The translations under genes and the position numbers were made by a program. Under the pieces are notes generated by a model. It searched no databases and had not been told where the DNA came from. It worked only from the letters and a program-made list of their open reading frames with translations. From Vitrella brassicaformis CCMP3155 (lineage: Eukaryota; Protista; Chromerida): DNA of 13,370 nt. Numbering within the stretch: position 1 is the stretch's first letter; every line of letters starts with the position of its first letter. Positions 1 to 13,370 of this stretch are shown one piece after another. The stretch spans positions 1 to 13,370 of the forward strand of contig CDMY01000880.1 in the NCBI GenBank assembly GCA_001179505.1, read 5' to 3'.

Positions 1-1170
1 GCGATCGCGACGAGGAGCGGCGGGAGAGGCGGCAGCATCGCGAGCGCGAGAAGGAGGAGACGGCCAGGGGCACTGCCACCACCCCCACACCCCCGTCCAC
101 GCAGCCAACGGCCGCTGACGAGAGGTCCACGTCACCAGCAGCTGCAGCAGCGGCAGCGGGGGGTGGTGCAGGGGAGGGGACGAGCCCTCAGCCTGCGTCA
201 GCGGCCCCTGCTGATGAGGACCGGGTAAGGCAAAGAGGCCGGCAGGTGGTGAGGTGGATTCTTCATTCCTTCTCTGCTGGCTCATGTGGGCGGTTTTTGG
301 TCGTCATCTCAGGAGGTGCCGCTGGTGGAGGGAGCAGTCAGTGTGGGAGGTGACAACACAGTTGCACCAATCAAGCCGGTCGTCGCGCACGGCGAGGAGT
401 CGTCGGTGGCTGGCGACAGAGATGGCCGCAACGCGTGGGCGGACGTGAGCGACGACGAGGACGTCCTGCCGCACCCCCACCAGCACCGCGGCGAGAGTGG
501 AACCCCGCAAAGGCGTGACGGTATGTCTGTGGGCGAGTGAATCGATGGAAACAGCCTGGTCGATCCCTCGTGTGTGCGTGTGGCTTGCTTGGTGCATAGG
601 AGAAGGAGGAGGAGGAGCGCGATGGCGAGCGAGAGCTTGACGGTGGCGGCGGAGGTGGGCGTCAGCGTGATCGACCCTCTCGTCCGCCGGGCAGGGACAG
701 ATACAACGAGCATGACGACAGACGTGAGTCGAGTCGAGTCGAGAGAGTGGCACACACACATTCATTCATTCATTCAGACACTCACACGACGACACACAGA
801 CACAGGCACGGCCAGGCGTCACATGACCTGCTGTGTGTGCAGGTCGTGGCGGTGGAGGTGGCGGTCGCGGCCCGCGCCCGTCGCTGGGGCGGGCCAGGTA
901 CTTCGAGAGGGAGAGGTGCCCGCCCGTCCCGGAAACCGTAAGCACTGTGATCCATCCATCCATTCATCCATCCATCCATCCGTCCATCGAGTGGTTCGTG
1001 TGTTGGTTCGTCAGTATAATGGCCCGTATGGCTTGATGCTGCACAACGTACCCTACAAAGCCACCAAACGCGACGTGGAAGACTTCCTCAGACCTTGCAG
1101 AGTCAGACAGACAGCACAGCACAGCCACCCAGACAACCCTCCCTCCCACGCCCACCTTGTCGCCTGTGCA

Positions 1171-1204
<34 letters not shown>

Positions 1205-4200
1205 TGTGTGTGGCTGTGCAGGCAAACCACATAAGGCTCGATGTCGACGCTCGTAACCCTAGCAAGAACATCGGCAGATGTGAGCGACCACGCACACACC
1301 CCCACGCCACGCGCCTCACCGCCTTGTCACATGTCGCGCACACTCAGGTTACGTCCAGTTCGACAACCGTCGCGACTTTGAGTTGGCATGGACACACGAC
1401 GGCCTGGTGGGTGCGGACACACTCACACACAATCTTCAATCACACGCAGGCACACACTGCCTCCATCCATGTGTTTCAGGAGATGTTCGGTCGCGAAATC
1501 CGCATCAGCCTGGCCGACGAGATGAAGGGCGCCATCGGCGGCCGACGCGACGACAGAGACAGGCCTGGATACAGCTTCACACGCAGAAGGCAAGACTGAC
1601 AAGCCCCTCCCCCCCAACACAGACACAGACACAGACACAAACACAGACACGCAGTGCACAGATCTTTATGTGTATGTGTGTGTGTGTGTGCAGCAGCAGG
1701 GAGGATGACTATCATCGTGACTCGGGCTACCATCGCGGCTATGGCGGTGGGGATGGGGATGGCGGTAGGCGCTCGGACAGGGACCGAGACAGAGGTAAGA
1801 TGGACACCCCAGACAGCAAAGTCATCCATCCAGCCATGTGTGGCCACACATGGCTGGATGGGTTGCAATGCAGGCGACATGACCCCAGCGAGCGGCGTCA
1901 GCCACGGCGGGCGGCAGCCCGTGATGGCCGCGCAGGGCCGCGTGATTGAATTCCTCACCTCGTGGGAGCCCTCGCGGTATGACAAGCCGTCGCCGGTGAC
2001 GGTGCGGGTGGTGCGGCGCTCTGGCCTCGTGGTGGGCGAGGTGCACCCGTACTCGATGGAGGCCAAGGTGTGGTGGTACATCGACCTGCATCACAAGGTG
2101 CATGGGCCCTTCAGCAGCCAGCAGATGCACGAGTGGGACAAGGCATACACGTTCTTCGACGACGCCCACGTCCTCTTCAGCCTGTGGTGCGACCTCGCGC
2201 AGCACCCGCAGCCCTGCCCGCCACACCAGCAGCCCCTCTTCGCCCACGGATTATACCCCAAGTACAGCTTTTTCGCCGAGAACGACCCCCGCGGGCCGGC
2301 ATTCACCTTCCCCGTCTCCACCATCCCCCTGGGCATCGTCACGACCCTTTCGGGCCCAGGGTGCCTCCACATAGTCCCCCAGCGTGGGCTTCCAGCACGG
2401 CCAGGGGGCGGCGGGAGGAGGGGTTGGGCCTCCCGCACAGGGCGGCATGGGGCACCATCACGTCGACGACCACGGCAACGGACCCTACAACGCCGCCAGT
2501 GCTGCGATCGAGGCCGGGAGCGACCGACAGCTGTCGCAGCCGATGGAGCCTTTGGCTCGGGAGGTCTCGCTGCCGTCTGCAGCATCCCCCCCTCAGCCGA
2601 CGGCCACTGATGAAGATGGTGTTGGGAGTGTGAAGCCAGCTGCCCCCGACGGCAGCCAAAAGGACGGGGGCATCGGTGTTGGTGCTGTGGTCGAGCACAA
2701 TCAGGAGTCGCCTGTGGTGGACGGCGAGGTTATGGAGACCGTGCCGACCGAGACACAGCAGGAAAGAGTCGAGGAGACTGTGCAGCCCCCACCCGTGGAG
2801 CCTGCCAAAGTCGAGGAGGGAGAGGTGGCCGAGCCCGCAGCGCCACAGGAGGAGGAGGCGCCTGCTGAGGGGCAGAAAGAGGCTGAGCCGGTCGAGACAC
2901 ACGCCGAGCCGGCCCCTGTGGCTGAGAAAGAGGCTGCCCCTGTTGAGGAAGCCAAGGGAAAGGCGGCCAAGGAAGACACGGCCAGTGTAAGCGACACACC
3001 ACAACACACTGCATTGTCTTGCCGATGAGTGTCACGGTGGTCTGTCCGTCTATCTCCCTCTGTTGTGTTCGTCAGTCATCCCGTCCCCAGGAGGCCTCTC
3101 GCGTCCCATCCTGCACCCCCGGGCAGCCAACCAGGTATGGCCCGCCCGCACTTGTGTCCCGCTGACTGCAACCACTGAATGCCTTTCTGTCCGTGTCTGT
3201 CTGTCTGTGTGCAGTGTGATAACGTCCCGCCGTGTGCTCAAGGGCAGCGACCTGCGGAGCGATCGCGACGAGGAGCGGCGGGAGAGGCGGCAGCATCGCG
3301 AGCGCGAGAAGGAGGAGACGGCCAGGGGCACTGCCACCACCCCCACACCCCCGTCCACGCAGCCNNNNNNNNNNNNNNNNNNNNNNNNNNNNNNNNNNNN
3401 NNNNNNNNNNNNNNNNNNNNNNNNNNNNNNNNNNNNNNNNNNNNNNNNNNNNNNNNNNNNNNNNNNNNNNNNNNNNNNNNNNNNNNNNNNNNNNNNNNNN
3501 NNNNNNNNNNNNNNNNNNNNNNNNNNNNNNNNNNNNNNNNNNNNNNNNNNNNNNNNNNNNNNNNNNNNNNNNNNNNNNNNNNNNNNNNNNNNNNNNNNNN
3601 NNNNNNNNNNNNNNNNNNNNNNNNNNNNNNNNNNNNNNNNNNNNNNNNNNNNNNNNNNNNNNNNCTGCTTTTGTGTGTGCTTCCAGCGCCCCCCCTGCGG
3701 CCGTTGGAGAGTTCGCTTGCATGACAGAGCCTGTCGTTGAAGCTGCCGAGGTTGTCCAGAAGGCCAAGAAGGAGAACAAGAAAGCTGAGGTGCCGCTGGG
3801 GGAGGGAGCAGTCGGTGCGGGAGGGGAGGCAAAGAAGGAGATGCCCGTCGAGGAAGAGGTTGGTGCATCCACCCCTAGAACAATAGCGCTCACCCATCTC
3901 GATGTCACTGTGTCCTTGCTCTGTCACATACGGTTGCGTGCAGGCCCCTCAAGCCCAAGAGCCTGACGGCACACCAGTCGGCCCACATGTCGAGGATACG
4001 TCGCCCGAGCACCGCCACTCACCGACGAAGACCAAGGAGGAGGAAGCTGTCGCTGGTCAGGAGGCCCCTGTGCCTATGGGTCAGGCTGAGGCCGCGCCAG
4101 CCGGGCGCGAGACACCGGCGGGCAAGACAAAGGTGGACAGGGAGGAGGCGGTGATGGAGCCGGTCAGGGAGGAGCCCTTGGTGCCTGCCAAGCAGGACAC

Positions 4201-7200
4201 CATCGCAGCAGAGTGCAGCGCGCCGCCCGAGACATCTCCATCATCGAGTCCGGTGAGTGCCAAGGAGGCTGAGGAGTGGCCAGCACCAGTGGAGAAGGAG
4301 GGAAAGCCCGTGTCAGAGGAGGTCAAGTCGGACGAGGGCTACGAACCCGACTTCGAAGACCAACAGGAGGGACAAGCAGACAGGTATTGCATCGAACACA
4401 CACATACACCTGCACGCGTTGTGCTGTCATGCCTCGTTTTGTGTGTGCTTCCAGCGCCCCCCCCCTCGGCCGTTGGAGAGTTCGCTGGCAAGACAGAGCC
4501 TGTCGTTGAAGCTGTCAAGGTTGTCCAGGAGGCCAAGAAGGAGAACAAAAAAGCTGAGGTGCCGCTGGGGGAGGGAACAGTCGGTGCGGGAGGGGAGGCA
4601 AAGAAGGAGATGCCCGTCGAGGAAGAGGTTGGTGCATCCACCCCTAGAACAATAGCGCTCACCCATCTCGATGTCACTGTGTCCTTGCTCTGTCACACAC
4701 GGTTGCGTGCAGGCCCCTCAAGCCCAAGAGCCTGACGGCACACCAGTCGGCTGCGACCGACAGCTGTCGCAGCCGATGGAGCCTTTGGCTCGGGAGGTCT
4801 CGCTGCCGTCTGCAGCATCCCCCCCTCAGCCGACGGCCACTGATGAAGATGGTGTTGGGAGTGTGAAGCCAGCTGCCCCCGACGGCAGCCAAAAGGACGG
4901 GGGCATCGGTGTTGGTGCTGTGGTTGAGCACAATCAGGAGTCGCCTGTGGTGGACGGCGAGGTCATGGAGACCGTGCCGACCGAGACACAGCAGGAAAGA
5001 GTCGAGGAGACCGTGCAGCCCCCACCCGTGGAGCCTGCCAAAGTCGAGGAGGGAGAGGTGGCCGAGCCCGCAGCGCCACAGGAGGAGGAGGCGCCTGCTG
5101 AGGGGCAGAAGGAGGCTGAGCCGGTCGAGACACACGCCGAGCCGGCCCCTGTGGCTGAGAAAGAGGCTGCCCCTGTTGAGGAAGCCAAGGGAAAGGCGGC
5201 CAAGGAAGACACGGCCAGTGTAAGCGACACACCACAACACACTGCATTGTCTTGCCGATGAGTGTCACGGTGGTCTGTCCGTCTATCTCCCTCTGTTGTG
5301 TTCGTCAGTCATCCCGTCCCCAGGAGGCCTCTCGCGTCCCATCCCGCACCCCCGGGCAGCCAACCAGGTATGGCCCGCCCGCACTTGTGTCCCGCTGACT
5401 GCAACCACTGAATGCCTTTCTGTCCGTGTCTGTCTGTCTGTGTGCAGTGTGATAACGTCCCGCCGTGTGCTCAAGGGCAGCGACCTGCGGAGCGATCGCG
5501 ACGAGGAGCGGCGGGAGAGGCGGCAGCATCGCGAGCGCGAGAAGGAGGAGACGGCCAGGGGCACTGCCACCACCCCCACACCCCCGTCCACGCAGCCNNN
5601 NNNNNNNNNNNNNNNNNNNNNNNNNNNNNNNNNNNNNNNNNNNNNNNNNNNNNNNNNNNNNNNNNNNNNNNNNNNNNNNNNNNNNNNNNNNNNNNNNNNN
5701 NNNNNNNNNNNNNNNNNNNNNNNNNNNNNNNNNNNNNNNNNNNNNNNNNNNNNNNNNNNNNNNNNNNNNNNNNNNNNNNNNNNNNNNNNNNNNNNNNNNN
5801 NNNNNNNNNNNNNNNNNNNNNNNNNNNNNNNNNNNNNNNNNNNNNNNNNNNNNNNNNNNNNNNNNNNNNNNNNNNNNNNNNNNNNNNNNNNNNNNNNACA
5901 GAGATGGCCGCAACGCGTGGGCGGACGTGAGCGACGACGAGGACGTCCTGCCGCACCCCCACCAGCACCGCGGCGAGAGTGGAACCCCGCAAAGGCGTGA
6001 CGGTATGTCTGTGGGCGAGTGAATCGATGGAAACAGCCTGGTCGATCCCTCGTGTGTGCGTGTGGCTTGCTTGGTGCATAGGAGAAGGAGGAGGAGGAGC
6101 GCGATGGCGAGCGAGAGCTTGACGGTGGCGGCGGAGGTGGGCGTCAGCGTGATCGACCCTCTCGTCCGCCGGGCAGGGACAGATACGACGAGCATGACGA
6201 CAGACGTGAGTCGAGTCGAGTCGAGAGAGTGGCACACACACATTCATTCATTCATTCAGACACGCACACGACGACACACAGACACAGACACGGCCAGGCG
6301 TCACATGACCTGCTGTGTGTGCAGGTCGTGGCGGTGGAGGTGGCGGTCGCGGCCCGCGCCCGTCGCTGGGGCGGGCCAGGTACTTCGAGAGGAAGAGGTG
6401 CCCGCCCGTCCCGGAAACCGTAAGCACTGTGATCCATCCATCCATTCATCCATCCATCCGTCCATCGAGTGGTTCGTGTGTTGGTTGGTCAGTATAATGG
6501 CCCGTATGGCCTTATCCTCGACAACATCCACTACGAGGCCACCAAACGCGACGTGGAAGTCTTCCTTACACCTTGCAGAGTCAGACAGACAGCACAGCAC
6601 AGCCACCCATACAGCCCTCCCTCCCACGCCCACCCTGTCTGTGCATCTCTCTCTCTCTGTGTGTGTATGTGTGTGTGTCTGCCGTGTGTGCGTGTGTGGC
6701 TGTGCAGGTGGACCACATGATGTTGGAAGCCGACCATCGCAACCCTGTCAAGAACCTCGGCAGATGTGAGCGACCACACACATGCACACACCCCCAGGCG
6801 CCTCACCGCCTTATCACATGTCGCGCACACTCAGGTTACGTCCAGTTCGACAACCGTCGCGACTTTGAGTTGGCATGGACATACGAAGGCCTGGTGGGTG
6901 CGGACACACTCACACACATTCTTCAATCACACGCAGGCACACACTGCCTCCCTCCATGTGTTTCAGATGATGCTGGGTCGGAGAATCCGCATCAGCACCG
7001 CCGACGAGATGAAATACGCCGTCGGCGGCCGACTGGACCCAGCAGCCGCAATCCGCTGCAACGACAACAACACTACCACCAGCAGCACCACGAGATGCCG
7101 AGGGCGGGCCAACGGGGCCTTGTTGCAGAGGACGCCCAATGGCAGAGGAGGGAGAGGGGGGCGCGGCCGAGGTCAGAAATACATACACAAACCAGATAGA

Positions 7201-7291
7201 TGACAACCAAAACACCAGCTTAACCGCATTGCATTGCTTGCTGTGTGTGTTTGCCGTTGCTGTGTGTGCAGCCTGGCCGGGAAGAGAGTAA
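1..7291 (+). CDS. Multi-exon RNA-binding protein, 5'-partial, with 2 eIF4B/4H-like RRMs, a DRYG-like tract, a GYF domain, acidic Pro/Ala-rich repeats and an RGG-like C-terminus; spans two assembly gaps
   Basis: Inferred exons: <1-224, 313-(444, 520 or 528), 600-654, 843-937, 1015-1101, 1222-1279, 1348-1406, 1480-1589, 1694-1794, 1874-2986 (frame break near 2375), 3076-3134, 3215-3364>gap, 3687-3858, 3944-4383, 4455-4627, 4713-5219, 5309-5367, 5448-5597>gap, <5898-(5926, 6002 or 6010), 6082-6136, 6325-6419, 6493-6579, 6708-6765, 6835-6893, 6967-7171, 7272-7291 (…AWPGRE-TAA). Phases are consistent except at the junctions listed under findings. Whether this is one gene across both gaps or tandem paralogs cannot be proven from this window. 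Confidence 0.75.
1015..1546 (+). other. RRM copy 1 (eIF4B/eIF4H-like), split over 4 exons
   Basis: Spliced peptide YNGPYGLMLHNVPYKATKRDVEDFLRPCRANHIRLDVDARNPSKNIGRCYVQFDNRRDFELAWTHDGLEMFGREIRISLADE. It has RNP2-like LMLHNV and RNP1-like GRCYVQF, and resembles my recollection of the eIF4B RRM (PYTAFLGNLPYDVT…NPERLKGFGYAEF…LGNRRIRVDVAD). Confidence 0.85.
1590..1693 (+). other. Non-canonical GC-AG intron
   Basis: Donor AG|GCAAGA in phase 2 joins the acceptor TGCAG|C in phase 2. I found no suitable GT donor before the in-frame stop at 1597-1599. Confidence 0.65.
1826..1861. repeat. Perfect 36-bp palindrome inside intron 1795-1873
   Basis: CCATCCAGCCATGTGTGG|CCACACATGGCTGGATGG is an exact reverse complement with no spacer. 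Confidence 0.97.
2068..2181 (+). other. GYF domain
   Basis: VWWYIDLHHKVHGPFSSQQMHEWDKAYTFFDDAHVLFS matches the GYF signature W-x-Y-x-D…GPF…M-x-x-W…(G)YF, with a degenerate final GYF motif. Confidence 0.8.
3365..3664. other. Assembly gap (300 N)
   Basis: Run of exactly 300 N. Confidence 1.
3669..4751 (+). repeat. Direct repeat 3669-3982 / 4437-4751 (K/E-rich exon, intron and next exon start)
   Basis: Offset 768-769 bp with a few percent divergence. Encodes AVGEFA(C/G)(M/K)TEPVVEA…KKENKKAEVPLGEG…KKEMPVEEE. Confidence 0.93.
5598..5897. other. Assembly gap (300 N)
   Basis: Run of exactly 300 N. Confidence 1.
6493..7033 (+). other. RRM copy 2 (diverged paralog of copy 1)
   Basis: Spliced peptide YNGPYGLILDNIHYEATKRDVEVFLTPCRVDHMMLEADHRNPVKNLGRCYVQFDNRRDFELAWTYEGLMMLGRRIRISTADE. 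The first three RRM exons have the same lengths as in copy 1 (87, 58, 59 nt) and the intron phases match. Confidence 0.85.
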
Positions 7292-7582: not shown

Positions 7583-7882
7583 NNNNNNNNNNNNNNNNNN
7601 NNNNNNNNNNNNNNNNNNNNNNNNNNNNNNNNNNNNNNNNNNNNNNNNNNNNNNNNNNNNNNNNNNNNNNNNNNNNNNNNNNNNNNNNNNNNNNNNNNNN
7701 NNNNNNNNNNNNNNNNNNNNNNNNNNNNNNNNNNNNNNNNNNNNNNNNNNNNNNNNNNNNNNNNNNNNNNNNNNNNNNNNNNNNNNNNNNNNNNNNNNNN
7801 NNNNNNNNNNNNNNNNNNNNNNNNNNNNNNNNNNNNNNNNNNNNNNNNNNNNNNNNNNNNNNNNNNNNNNNNNNNNNNNNNN
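7583..7882. other. Assembly gap (300 N)
   Basis: Run of exactly 300 N; both flanks share AGTGCCAC. Confidence 1.
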
Positions 7883-8906: not shown

Positions 8907-9752
8907 TCATGCTGGATCTCTCCACAAGTTGGTGGACTTCTTGTCCGTGTCGACGCCGTGCACCACTATGCTGCTCACCACGTTCACACATCACATAGAC
9001 ACAGACACAGGTGTCAAGCCGCTGGTTTGCCTTGTGTGGTGGATCGCTTCTCTCACCTGAACGCAGCGCTGCCGAGGACGGCCGTGGCGAAAAAGTTGGC
9101 CGACTCACGACCAACTACCGAACTGCACACACACACACACAAACACACCGGACTACACACCAGACAACCCCACTTGGAGACCATTCGTCTGTGTGTGAGT
9201 GTGTGTGTGGGGGTTTTCTCCCTCACACGAGTGCGCCGGCCACAGCCCCTCCAGTGCCGGCGTCCAGCGGGTAGGGCACCCCGATGCGCCGCAGAGCACA
9301 TGACATGAACGACGTCACAACTGAGCCAACGCACACAACCGTCCATCAAACACACAGACAATCCGACAATAAAGCAGCCTGTCTTGTCTGCAGTGCGTCT
9401 GTGTGTGTTTGGCTGTTGGATGGACAGATGACTTACAGCACCAAGATCCGAAGTACAGGGCGGTCTTGCCCGTCAGCAGACTCCGACGGCCAATCCACCG
9501 CACGCCGCGCAACACTGACGAGTGTGGGTGGATCTTGCCCGAAGAGGGCGGCCGAGATGATGACACGCCTGCACTCGGCTGCTGATGAGTGGGAGTGGCA
9601 TTGCTGCTGCTGCTGCCAGGTTTGCGCTTGGGTGTGTGGAGTTCTTTGGCGAATAGAATGCCGAAGACTGTGCCCGATACGATGCCGCGGAAGAAGGACT
9701 CGACGCTGCCGTCCAGACAGGCCACCTCGGGCGGCACCACCACCAGCGACAT
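8907..9752 (-). CDS. Tim17/Tim22/Tim23 (PRAT) family membrane translocase subunit, 179 aa
   Basis: Exons 9752-9437, 9320-9227, 9122-9057 and 8970-8907 total 540 nt. All introns are GT-AG and phase-consistent. Protein: MSLVVVPPEVACLDGSVESFFRGIVSGTVFGILFAKE…TGKTALYFGSWCFVTSFMSCALRRIGVPYPLDAGTGGAVAGALVSVVGRESANFFATAVLGSAAFSIVVHGVDTDKKSTNLWRDPA*. It has four Gly-rich (GxxxG-type) hydrophobic segments in the family arrangement. Subfamily is not determined. Confidence 0.75.
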
Positions 9753-9995
9753 CGATTCTATGGATAGACGATGAAATGAGAGGAGGAGATGAGATCTCAA
9801 CTCACTGCCAACTTCTCACTGCCCGCTGAAGGACGGACAATGTCATGTTGATGATCTCTTCTCAGGTCACTCTTCGTGTCTACACCTCCCCAGGGATTTG
9901 AGCTCGCGGGCAGACTTGCAGATCTGACTCATCTCAGTGCCGCGTGACACCGAGGGCCATGGCCTGAGCGCATTAAGCAATCGTCTGTTGAAGTC
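9753..9995. promoter_or_regulatory. Putative compact bidirectional promoter between the divergent Tim17-family and GAA1 start codons (second copy 10767-11024)
   Basis: 243 bp (258 bp in the second copy) between head-to-head ATGs. CTCA(C/G)TGCC occurs three times (9801, 9815, 9933). Promoter function is inferred from gene arrangement only. Confidence 0.55.
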
Positions 9996-10376
9996 ATGGG
10001 TGTTGTCCGCGACGGCGTGGCGACCTTCTTGGCGCCCCGTCTGCGGCAGATCTCCCTCCTGGTGGCCCTCGCAGGCGCCATCTGGCTCAGCATGTTCGAC
10101 GCATTCGACAGACCAACAGTCATCGAAGAGCACGGCCTCGTCCCGGGCTATGCACAGCACGGCTTCAGCACATCACACAGCAGCCAGCAGCTGGGCGCCA
10201 TGAGGCAAGAGCTAAGAGAAGCGACGGCTGACGGATCATCTTCAAGGTCATCGTCTCATGCTGCTGCTACTGGTGCTGGTGGTGGTGGTGGTGGTGGTGT
10301 GGCGGGGCACCTGCAGTCGGCCCTTGAGCAGTCGGGCCTGCCTGCCTACAACATCAGCTGGAGCTGCTTCGATGGG
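9996..10376 (+). CDS. GPAA1: Second copy of the GAA1 5' end, cut off by an assembly gap (alternative haplotype or paralog)
   Basis: Open reading frame nearly identical to 11025-11390. It differs by substitutions and in-frame indels only (extra Ala; Gly7 vs Gly3) and runs into the Ns at 10377. Confidence 0.7.
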
Positions 10377-10676
10377 NNNNNNNNNNNNNNNNNNNNNNNN
10401 NNNNNNNNNNNNNNNNNNNNNNNNNNNNNNNNNNNNNNNNNNNNNNNNNNNNNNNNNNNNNNNNNNNNNNNNNNNNNNNNNNNNNNNNNNNNNNNNNNNN
10501 NNNNNNNNNNNNNNNNNNNNNNNNNNNNNNNNNNNNNNNNNNNNNNNNNNNNNNNNNNNNNNNNNNNNNNNNNNNNNNNNNNNNNNNNNNNNNNNNNNNN
10601 NNNNNNNNNNNNNNNNNNNNNNNNNNNNNNNNNNNNNNNNNNNNNNNNNNNNNNNNNNNNNNNNNNNNNNNNNNNN
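10377..10676. other. Assembly gap (300 N)
   Basis: Run of exactly 300 N. Confidence 1.
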
Positions 10677-10766
10677 GAAGACTGTGCCCGATACGATGCC
10701 GCGGAAGAAGGACTCGACGCTGCCGTCCAGACAGGCCACCTCGGGCGGCACCACCACCAGCGACAT
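10677..10766 (-). other. Duplicate of the first 30 codons of the Tim17-family gene, truncated by a gap
   Basis: Identical to 9663-9752 (MSLVVVPPEVACLDGSVESFFRGIVSGTVF). Confidence 0.8.
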
Positions 10767-11024
10767 CGATTCTATGGATAGACGATGAAATGAGAGGAGG
10801 AGATGAGATCTCAACTCACTGCCAACTTCTCACTGCCCGCTGAAGGACGGACAATGTCATGTTGATGATCTTGATGATCTCTCAGGTCATTCTTCGTATC
10901 CAAACCTCCCCAGGGATTTAAGCTCGCGGTGGAAAGGGGCAGACTTGAAGATCTGACTCATCTCACTGCCGCGTGACACCGAGGACGATGGCCTCAGCGC
11001 ATTAAGCAATCGTCTGTTGAAGTC

Positions 11025-13370
11025 ATGGGTGTTGTCCGCGACGGCGTGGCCTCCTTCTTAGCGCCCCGTTTGCGGCAGATCTCCCTCCTGGTGGCCCTCG
11101 CAGGCGCCATCTGGCTCAGCATGTTCGACGCATTCGACAGACCAACAGTCATCGAAGAGCACGGCCTCGTCCCGGGCTATGCACAGCACGGCTTCAGCAC
11201 ATCACACAGCAGCCAGCAGCTGGGCGCCACGAGGCAAGAGCTGAGAGAAGCGACGGCTGACGTATCATCTAGAAGGTCATCGTCTCATGCTGCTACTGGT
11301 GCTGGTGGTGGTGTGGCGGGGCACCTGCAGTCGGCCCTTGAGCGGTCGGGGCTGCCAGCCTACAACATCAGCTGGAGCTACTTCGATGGGGAGGTGCGGG
11401 GCACGACAGTTGTGGCGGTGGTGCCGTCTGCTCGTGGCGACTCGAGGGAGAGCATCGTGCTCGTCATGGCCTCGGACTGGCGCGACAGGGACGACACGGC
11501 CACTCCCGCAGTGGGGCTCGCACTGGCGGACTACCTGCAGACGGTTCAGTGGCTTGCGCGTGACGTCATTGTGATCTTCACCGACCGGACGCTGCCGTAC
11601 GCCGCAGGTCAGACACACACAGACAGGCAGACGGCTGTGAATGGATGGATGTGTGTGGTTTGTCTGCAGGGGTCCGTGCGTTCCTTGACGGCTATTTGCG
11701 TGACAAGGCGCCCTTTCCCCGCAGGGGCCTCATGCGCCAGGCCGTCATATTCGAGATCGACAAGGACCGCCCCAACCAAGTCGCCGTGACACTGGACATC
11801 GGTACGCACAGCATTTGCAACTAAATGGGTCTTGCGTATGTGTGTCTGTGTGCAGAGGGTGTGAACGGTCTGCAGCCGAACCAGGACCTGGTCAACGCCT
11901 ATGCGATAGAGGCCAAGCAGGACGGCATTAGAGCGGAGCCCAGAGAGGCCTGGGATTCCGTCAACCGAATGGCCACCGATGCCGGGGCCGACCGAATCCA
12001 CTCGGCCTTCCTGCAGTAAGTCCATCATGCACACAATCATAAGGCAATGAAGTGTTCGCTTCCTGCCCTTGTTGCCGTCAGGCGTGCCATCCCTGCGTTG
12101 ACCGCAGTGGCCTCGTCTAACCCGCGGGGCGGCAACGGCCAGCCCAAACTGACTCAGCTGGGCGGGTAAGGTCCATGTGTACTGATCCCCTTCCCTCTCT
12201 CTGAGTATGCTGTGTGTGTCTTATGTGTGCATGCAGCTCGTTGGAGGGCATCTTGCGTTGCCAGAGCAGCGCTCTGCAGGCGCTGCACCATTCCTTCAAC
12301 TTCTACTTCTTCACCAGACCCAACAGCCACGTGTCGTCCGGCCTCTACCTCTACCCCGTGTTCGGCATGCTCATGCCGCTCGCCGCAGCGGTCAGCCAAT
12401 GGATGGATGGATGGATGGATTTGTCTGTCTTGGCTGGTGCTGGTTTGGTCGTCAGACGTTTCAGTGTCGGGTGTTTAGTGACGTGGGAGCTGTGATGCTT
12501 GGCGCGACCGTCATGCTCTCGGGCGTCATCGCAGGCAGCCTCACGTCTTTCGCACTGGCCACACAGGTGAGATCGGTCACACACAGCCAGAAAGCGGGGA
12601 ACTTTGGTTTGCATGCTGGCCCTTGTCTCTTCTTCAGAGTGGTCTTGTGGACCAGCTGTCATCTTGGGGCATTGGGGGTCTGCTCCCATCAGCATCCTCC
12701 CTCCTTCGCTGGAGGCATGCAGGCCTCCTCACCCCGTCATGCACACCAGCAGCTGCACACGACAAGCGCCAAGTGCGGACGGCCAGAAAGGTCAGCACAT
12801 CGAGAGGCTGCACTCCACGGCACCGCACCACTCACCGTGTGCTGTGCTGTGCTGTGTGTTGCAGAAGGCGTCTGTGTGGGTGTGGGTGGCGCTGATGGGC
12901 TACGCCGCCGTCGGTCTCATCTGTTTGGTCAGTGAGGCGCTCATTCGACAGCCACGATCATCACGCCAGCCAGCCAAAGGCGACAGCGTGGCAAAGGGGA
13001 ACGAAGCGACGGGTGAAGGGGAGCCGAGCATCCGTGAGATGCCGCCGCTGTGGATGTGCGTCAAGAGTGTGGCGAGGGCGATGGCCATTCTCACATTGGC
13101 ACCACTCACGGTGAGCGAGCCAAGCCGAATCCATCCATCCATCCATTGATTTGGTGTCGACCCCCTTCCCTTTTGTTTAGGTGTACAACTGGGCTGCGTC
13201 AGTGTACTTGACGCCATTAGTGGTGCCGCCGCTCCTGCTGGTGGAGCCTCTTACCTCACTCATCGATGCGCCACAGCAGCCGACGACCGCCCAATCGCCC
13301 CCGCAGCACAGCGGCAGATGGCGGTGGAAATGGCGGCCTCGGCTGCGACGAAGCCATCTGTTCGTCCTGC
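11025..13370 (+). CDS. GPAA1: GPI-anchor transamidase subunit GAA1/GPAA1, 3'-partial
   Basis: Exons 11025-11607, 11670-11801, 11856-12015, 12082-12165, 12237-12390, 12456-12566, 12638-12790, 12865-13110 and 13181->13370 are all GT-AG and phase-consistent. Gaa1 motifs follow an N-terminal TM segment: EEHGLVPG, ARGDSRESIVL, VGLALADYLQTVQWLARDVIVIFTD, LDIEGVNGLQPNQDLVN, HSAFLQRAIPALT, SLEGILRCQSSALQALHHSFNFYF…VSSGLY, then multiple C-terminal TM segments. Confidence 0.92.

Follow-up and report, generated by a model that had tools for sequence, protein, structure and literature searches.

Whether a single gene of the chromerid Vitrella brassicaformis joins an eIF4B-like RNA-binding module to a GYF domain is the question raised by the beginning of contig CDMY01000880.1 (strain CCMP3155), of which a stretch of 13,370 nucleotides (nt), henceforth referred to as the window, was analyzed. 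An initial annotation of this DNA had listed a WAD motif, an RGG-like linker, an RRM (RNA recognition motif), a stretch rich in D, R, Y and G and a GYF domain, and had proposed a lineage-specific translation-control protein. All of these elements are present in the DNA where they had been placed. Their in-frame arrangement in the DNA, the identities of the two domains and their paralogy to other Vitrella sequences are shown below. With modest confidence, we interpret the gene, henceforth copy 1, as a young exon-shuffled chimera that is weakly or not expressed and under relaxed constraint, and not as an established translation regulator.

The exon model lies on the + strand, in GC-rich eukaryotic DNA with short GT-AG introns. 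The RRM of copy 1 (RRM1, 1015-1545) is divided over four exons (1015-1101, 1222-1279, 1348-1406 and 1480-1545), the last of which is part of exon 7 (1480-1589), encoding the RRM up to 1545 and then the start of the D/R/Y/G-rich tract. The domain was typed mainly through a sister gene in the same window (copy 2), whose contiguous product, P0051 (217 amino acids [aa]), derives from a JGI transcriptome contig and whose RRM (RRM2) is identical to RRM1 at 66 of 90 residues (73%). In a search of 177,635 PDB sequences, the top three matches of P0051 were eIF4H (2dng, E 8.2e-5) and two entries of eIF4B (2j76, 3.6e-4; 1wi8, 1.2e-3), all aligned over the whole domain, with RBM12 as the next RRM (E 0.015). 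Its Atlas neighbours are RRM clusters throughout. For exon 4 of copy 1 alone, human eIF4B ranks first in PDB, at a non-significant E of 0.68. Pfam RRM_1 (PF00076) stays below threshold on P0051 (12.8 vs 20.7 bits, E 0.11), the alignment covering positions 3-70 of the 70 in the profile. No RRM was returned when the RRM exons, taken one by one, and the frame-1 read-through window:1015-1599 were scanned against Pfam. Likewise, PDB searches with exon 6, exon 7, a two-sequence profile of exon 4 and the exon 5-6 read-through of copy 2 gave no match, nor did a word search with the read-through 574-1599, which was limited by its length window of 0.55-1.75x. Typed by P0051 and by exon 4 of copy 1, the RRM is predicted to be a divergent member of the eIF4B/eIF4H type, and the eIF4B-type RRM claimed earlier holds in that P0051 matches eIF4H and eIF4B ahead of every other solved RRM.

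The likeness is not confined to the RRM subtype and the full-domain alignment of the sister copy with EIF4B (PDB 1WI8, 2J76) and EIF4H (PDB 2DNG). The sister-copy RRM has in common with both a 'PY' before beta-1, the pattern G-x-C-Y-V-[EQ]-F at RNP1 and a terminal IR(V/I)..AD. As in eIF4H, a G/R-rich segment lies ahead of the RRM, here encoded by exon 3 (843-937; RRRGGGGGGRGPRPS...PPVPET), the junctions of which are confirmed in the sister-copy transcript. As in eIF4B, an acidic WAD motif is found upstream and a D/R/Y/G-rich tract downstream of the RRM, in the same order (for the domain order of eIF4B, see PMC8762332; for its DRYG region, Methot et al. 1996, as cited in PMC8762332). The motif (NAWADVSDDED, 430-462; WAD itself at 436-444) is encoded by exon 1 (313-520), in its sole open frame, with coding-like GC contents of 0.80/0.48/0.77 at the three codon positions. 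The string 'WAD' is rare, occurring three times in the 26,736 residues of the six-frame translation of the window, twice as the motif and its duplicate. Between motif and linker, exon 2 (600-723) encodes an acidic, R/D-rich segment (EKEEEERDGEREL...RPPGRDRY...) with one PPGR motif in the frame of the RRM (codon-position GC 0.83/0.51/0.63), and is present in the JGI transcripts L002 and L004 and in P0051. The DRYG-like tract (1546-1794) is formed by the end of exon 7 (to 1589) and exon 8 (1694-1794), separated by a predicted GC-AG intron (1590-1693); 79% of its 52 residues are D, R, Y or G (D11, R14, Y4, G12), which is a likeness in composition only. The overall resemblance to eIF4B/eIF4H is more than compositional, given the type of the RRM, the WAD-acidic motif and G/R-rich linker ahead of it and the DRYG-like tract that follows.

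There are also clear differences. Unlike in eIF4B, the module is not N-terminal in copy 1. The window begins inside exon 0, the 3' part of which (1-224; acidic, proline/alanine-rich coding sequence) is spliced to exon 1 (224|313), and farther upstream the frame stays open as far as base 1. The WAD motif thus has at least 110 coding residues ahead of it in the window, and an acidic N-terminal extension of ∼300 residues is predicted on the model of the repeated unit (X region, described below). Because exon 0 is spliced to exon 1 and a long acidic region precedes exon 0 in the repeats, the WAD motif lies far from the N-terminus; the likeness to animal eIF4B, with its N-terminal WAD(E) motif, that the initial annotation drew stands for the motif but not for its position. 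Copy 1 moreover lacks the C-terminal arginine-rich RNA-binding region of eIF4B, the GYF exon following directly after the DRYG-like tract, and the R-rich frame-1 tail at 2341-2607 has a non-coding codon-position GC. In contrast to eIF4B and eIF4H, the Vitrella RRM has Arg in place of the aromatic residue at RNP1 position 3, the gene is multi-copy and arranged in tandem, and sequenced mRNAs do not keep the WAD exon and the RRM in one frame.

GYF domains bind proline-rich motifs. The conserved part of exon 9 (1874-2340) includes the GYF core at 2071-2166; in the translation of window:1876-2607, residues 66-97 match Pfam PF02213 with 32.5 bits (cut-off 25.7) over profile positions 1-32 of 45. The nearest solved sequences are GIGYF1, Smy2 and GIGYF2 (PDB, E ∼1e-3), with which the core shares the pattern W-x-Y-x-D...GPF....M..W and which are also its best structural matches. 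An AlphaFold model of the exon, built from a 25-row alignment, is poor overall (pLDDT 55), and only its core was used, residues 61-95 reaching pLDDT 76-88 and the remainder being of low confidence. With this beta-beta-alpha core as query, the top nine Foldseek matches in PDB are all GYF domains, superposing at 0.4-1.3 Å over 28-30 columns on Smy2/GIGYF. The GYF assignment, above the Pfam cut-off and nearest to Smy2 and GIGYF1/2, is therefore borne out. Unlike Smy2/GIGYF, however, copy 1 has no 4EHP-binding motif (neither YxYxxxxL-phi nor YxxxxL-phi was found in a regular-expression scan of the joined model), its triad reads AYTF, and its GYF domain is C-terminal to the RRM. As the 4EHP-binding motif is lacking, copy 1 is not a GIGYF-like repression adaptor by membership, and the repression-adaptor role of the GIGYF kind suggested earlier falls away.

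When 1.84 billion cluster representatives were searched exhaustively with the GYF exon as query, a sole close relative emerged, P0001 (67% identity), which is CEM13503.1 from the same strain (UniRef A0A0G4FIM2, 'GYF domain-containing protein'; locus L001). The GYF exon of copy 1 and the terminal exon of L001 are 62% identical in aa (tblastn) and 79% in nt over ∼127 codons, and conserved flanks are found outside the GYF domain itself (PSPVTVRVVR; GQHPQPCPPHQQPL; DPRGP.FT.PVS.IPL.IV). Unlike copy 1, CEM13503.1 keeps the canonical GYF triad, ends 6 codons past the conserved 'SIPLSIV' and is transcribed (L003, MMETSP Transcript_45482). Its GYF exon follows unrelated exons, the upstream 936-aa model showing a weak BTB_2 match and no RRM, and no RRM is found within 10 kb at its locus. 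The remaining matches of the search are multi-GYF proteins. In a Pfam scan of 47 GYF relatives, RRM_1 did not feature among the 25 most frequent families, and the joined RRM of copy 1 matched none of the 50 sequences from the GYF search (local phmmer). A word search with the GYF exon, under the same length limit of 0.55-1.75x, gave no match. In the literature, no RRM+GYF or eIF4B+GYF protein was found described, in agreement with the earlier view of this fusion as an undescribed architecture. With one close GYF relative, no match to this RRM among the relatives and no published description found, the RRM+GYF architecture looks lineage-specific, and it looks to have arisen by duplication of a terminal exon. 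Separately, 31 nt (CCGTCGCCGGTGACGGTGCGGGTGGTGCGGC) are identical between window 1988-2018 and L001 9933-9963, within paralogous exons that are otherwise 79% identical.

Taken together, copy 1 is one member of a tandemly duplicated gene family of V. brassicaformis, whose members share an acidic N-terminal region, an exon with a WAD motif, an RGG linker and an RRM of the eIF4B/eIF4H type. It leaves the pattern of its sister in the last 45 nt of the RRM exon, running on into the D/R/Y/G tract, a predicted 79-nt intron and a Smy2/GIGYF-type GYF exon that is a diverged duplicate of the last exon at the CEM13503.1 locus. Since the GYF exon duplicates the last exon of another Vitrella gene, the architecture probably arose by recent exon shuffling or segmental duplication. 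The RRM-to-GYF junctions are compatible in phase and leave one stop-free frame: 1589|1694 (AAG|GCAAGA...CAG), and 1794|1874 (GAG|GTAAGA...CAG) across the predicted GT-AG intron 8 (1795-1873, 79 nt). The residues at the predicted fusion junction are DRDRDRG|DMTPASG (junction peptide DRDRDRGDMTPASG). If copy 1 is spliced and translated as modelled, the RRM and RGG segments may bind RNA, the DRYG-like tract may self-associate or contact eIF3-like partners, and the GYF domain may dock proline-rich ligands of the PPG type.

Several observations weigh against such a protein being made. Expression was assessed with RNA-derived spliced contigs of two public runs, X1 and X2, and with the JGI transcripts L002 and L004. 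These confirm the junctions 224|313 (X1, X2 and L002), 520|600 and 2986|3076 and the RRM introns. All RRM transcripts recovered (X1 record 2, L002 and L004) nevertheless stem from copy 2 and lack the GYF exon, the RRM RNA contig showing the 13 exon-4 differences and the tail of that copy; a working translation-control fusion protein, as had been proposed, is therefore not supported. No RNA contig of X1 or X2 lies on 1569-1904, so the RRM-DRYG-GYF junctions are read from the genomic sequence: the splicing described by the initial annotation is consistent in phase and free of stops, but is not covered by RNA. The copy-1-specific exon 5 occurs in no RNA contig. No predicted protein with the copy-1 GYF exon came back from the search of the 1.84 billion cluster representatives, while the same collection includes the products of both the GYF paralogue and the sister copy. 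Scans of metagenome_contigs with a 28-mer of exon 8 and a 22-mer common to both RRM copies gave no match but were uninformative, since the 22-mer occurs in L002 and the collection lacks the sample.

The coding sequence itself adds to these objections. In exon 9, A-Y-T-F takes the place of the G-Y-F triad, and neither the profile match nor the confident part of the model extends over the C-terminal third of the domain. By codon-position GC, frame 1 ceases to look coding past 2340, and from ∼2396 frame 2, belonging to an acidic region, is coding-like. Between RRM1 and RRM2, the proportions of differences are pS 0.205 and pN 0.151 (pN/pS 0.74), and the GYF exon compared with that of CEM13503.1 gives a dN/dS of 0.91. 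To judge from these comparisons, divergence from the paralogues is close to neutral in both the RRM and the GYF exon. The distribution of the differences is uneven, however. Over 1015-1545 versus 6493-7032, 44 of 270 exon nt differ (16%) versus 8 of 253 nt in the three introns (3%), and upstream only 5 of 595 nt differ. Exon 6, which encodes RNP1, is an exception among the exons (2 of 59 nt differ). Such a pattern fits neither neutral decay nor positive selection in its simple form.

A further point against the protein is the junction between the WAD and RRM parts. All full-length transcripts splice intron 1 (521-599) as 520|600, with the AG at 598-599 (L002 and L004 read GTGACG|GAGAAGG). With this junction, the WAD frame runs into a stop at 638-640, the WAD motif is read in a frame other than that of the RRM, and no AUG precedes the RRM in its own frame. 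In X1 and X2 contigs the joints are at 519|599 (cut +1); a single X2 contig shows 520|598, 2 nt upstream of the transcript acceptor, which keeps the frame. The WAD frame is the sole open one in exon 1, and exon 2 is coding-like in the RRM frame; for the two to be continuous, exon 2 has to begin at 598. The peptide predicted across this junction is QRRDEEKEEE in frame and QRRDGEGGGG...RARA in the truncated form. The view of WAD motif and RRM as one eIF4B-like module is thus confirmed for the presence of both parts, but not for their continuity. Conceivable origins of the break are a minor isoform, a third paralogue that has an upstream acceptor, or a recently disabled gene pair. A frame break of the same kind is seen at the CEM13503.1 locus, where the GYF ORF is +1 relative to the upstream coding ORF both in the genome (L001:9808-10294) and in the mRNA (L003:527-1014) and where the GYF part is annotated as a separate 97-aa protein. 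A conserved domain ORF that is +1 to a long upstream coding ORF and has no usable AUG is found twice, in independent transcripts, for WAD-RRM (L002, L004) and for the GYF paralogue (L003). That Vitrella ORFs one nt out of register are still joined in one protein, whether ribosomes shift by +1 in a programmed manner or splicing uses a non-canonical 3' site, strikes us as barely credible; if true, the WAD-RGG-RRM-DRYG-GYF protein would really be made, and recoding would be a feature of the Vitrella lineage.

Besides the chimera favoured here, copy 1 might be a functional lineage-specific translation-control protein, its eIF4B-like module being coupled to a GYF adaptor in such a way that contacts with mRNA or with eIF4A/eIF3 are linked to proline-motif partners. 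Its ORF is intact over five introns with good splice sites, both domain identities hold, the codon bias of exon 9 is strong (GC3 0.92), the frame-keeping junction 520|598 exists in one X2 contig, and X2 contigs record transcription of a close variant of exon 9 (1989-2736, across the duplication boundary at 2515). However, neither a fusion transcript nor a protein model was found, the dominant junction 520|600 breaks the frame, divergence is near neutral, a 4EHP-binding or eIF4E-binding motif is missing, as is the C-terminal arginine-rich region of eIF4B, and we consider a functional protein doubtful. The same X2 contigs would also fit with a GYF exon that lies outside the RRM1 transcript, either in a separate or overlapping unit with the acidic region 2396-3364 or as a dead duplication fragment. 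In line with this, X1 covers 2513-2986 and not 1569-2464, an ATG is found 5 nt into exon 9, frame 2 becomes coding-like from ∼2396, and the GYF ORF of the paralogue is likewise out of frame with its upstream ORF in a real mRNA. Yet exons 8 and 9 are only 79 nt apart, with canonical GT..AG borders and matching phase, and conservation with the paralogue begins upstream of any ATG able to start a stand-alone GYF protein, making a separate unit decidedly unlikely.

Little credence can be given to an assembly artefact, in which RRM1 and the DRYG/GYF part would have been mis-joined through the (CA)n/(GT)n-rich intron 1590-1693. The draft scaffold does contain near-identical repeats and four stretches of N, DNA coverage reaches its minimum over 1569-1680, a part in which repeats had been skipped, and one N gap (7584-7882) is demonstrably spurious. 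Divergence from copy 2, however, begins at 1545 within exon 7 and not in the repeat, and the end of exon 7 that is specific to copy 1 shares the D/R-richness of exon 8, the DRYG-like composition thus starting ahead of the unconfirmed intron. Moreover, no N is present between 1 and 3364, and DNA contigs of two studies overlap and tile 1701-2456 without differences. 

If copy 1 is expressed, it would physically couple an RNA-binding module of the eIF4B/eIF4H type to a proline-motif reader of the class found in GIGYF/Smy2 repression complexes, and would provide a dated example of a new architecture generated by exon shuffling in a tandem array, in a free-living relative of apicomplexan parasites. 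Even if it is non-functional, the locus documents a multi-copy gene family with an eIF4B/4H-type RRM in chromerids, in which domain exons diverge ∼five times faster than introns and transcripts carry frame breaks. The multi-copy family, the fast exon divergence and the frame breaks are each relevant to the annotation of translation factors in alveolates.

The tandem array is apparent from several duplications: 416-1551 recurs at 5898-7038, 2515-3364 at 4748-5597, and 1-106 (repeat D7) at 3259-3364 and 5492-5597. Assembly gaps interrupt the array at 3365-3664 and 5598-5897. Sister copy 2 (5898-7291, + strand), the transcribed copy, consists of the WAD exon, exon 2, the RGG exon, RRM2 and an N/T/S- and RGG-rich tail. 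Its exons 1-3 with their introns are nearly identical to those of copy 1 (5 differences in 595 nt) and the exon structure of the RRM is the same. Homology ends at 1545/7032, inside exon 7, the last 45 nt onward being different; the tail of copy 2 is unrelated (N/T/S-rich, then RGG) and contains neither a DRYG tract nor a GYF exon. The region 2515-3364 (+ strand; repeats D3 and D7) comprises the acidic region 'X', a pair of small exons and another copy of exon 0, with an RNA contig on 2660-2986 that is spliced at 2986|3076. The next family member probably has its 5' part here. In the acidic upstream exons at 3689-3982 and 4458-4751, an internal repeat (EVPLGEGAVGAGGEAKKEMPVEEE) resembles the start of the WAD exon (313-352; EVPLVEGAVSVGG), and the N-terminal regions of the family are built from repeated modules. 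At 408, contigs of X2 (RNA) and X3 (DNA) have loose ends that represent another version of the WAD exon, set apart by its 5' part (…CCCCCTACCGACGGGTCGTCTC) and by 7 differences, which shows that at least a third family member exists elsewhere in the genome.

Beyond the conserved part of exon 9, frame 1 runs on (2341-2610) to a stop codon at 2608-2610, with codon-position GC that is not coding-like in this frame. A candidate 58-nt intron that would connect the GYF exon to the acidic frame (2338-2395) has a weak donor, no structure and no RNA support. About half of the DNA contig depth in this region (runs X3 and X4) represents a variant of the GYF exon tail with a 44-nt deletion (2342-2385) and a cluster of substitutions and 1-nt indels (2240-2295), which points to a further paralogue or allele. 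This deletion does not restore the acidic frame.

The predicted intron 8, right where the DRYG exon is followed by the acquired GYF exon, contains a perfect 18-bp hairpin at ∼1824-1863 (CAUCCAUCCAGCCAUGUG / CACAUGGCUGGAUGGGUG-type palindrome; -39.6 kcal/mol, z -4.67), a stability that none of 200 shuffles reached. The hairpin could be a foldback element or could have been left as a scar by the rearrangement. The idea that all introns at this locus are fold-backs was discarded, only intron 8 folding better than its shuffles.

Downstream of copy 2, transcript L002 crosses the run of N at 7584-7882, which is spurious because the sequences flanking it overlap by 8 nt in L002 (AGTGCCAC on both sides). 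The transcript continues to ∼9442 with two more splices, giving copy 2 a very long 3' region. The next gene (9987-13370, + strand) encodes a Gaa1-like component of GPI transamidase (PF04114 in Pfam, with 35.3 bits on 11025-11606). The promoter region and first exon of this gene occur twice, on either side of another N gap, 9663-10376 recurring at 10677-11390.

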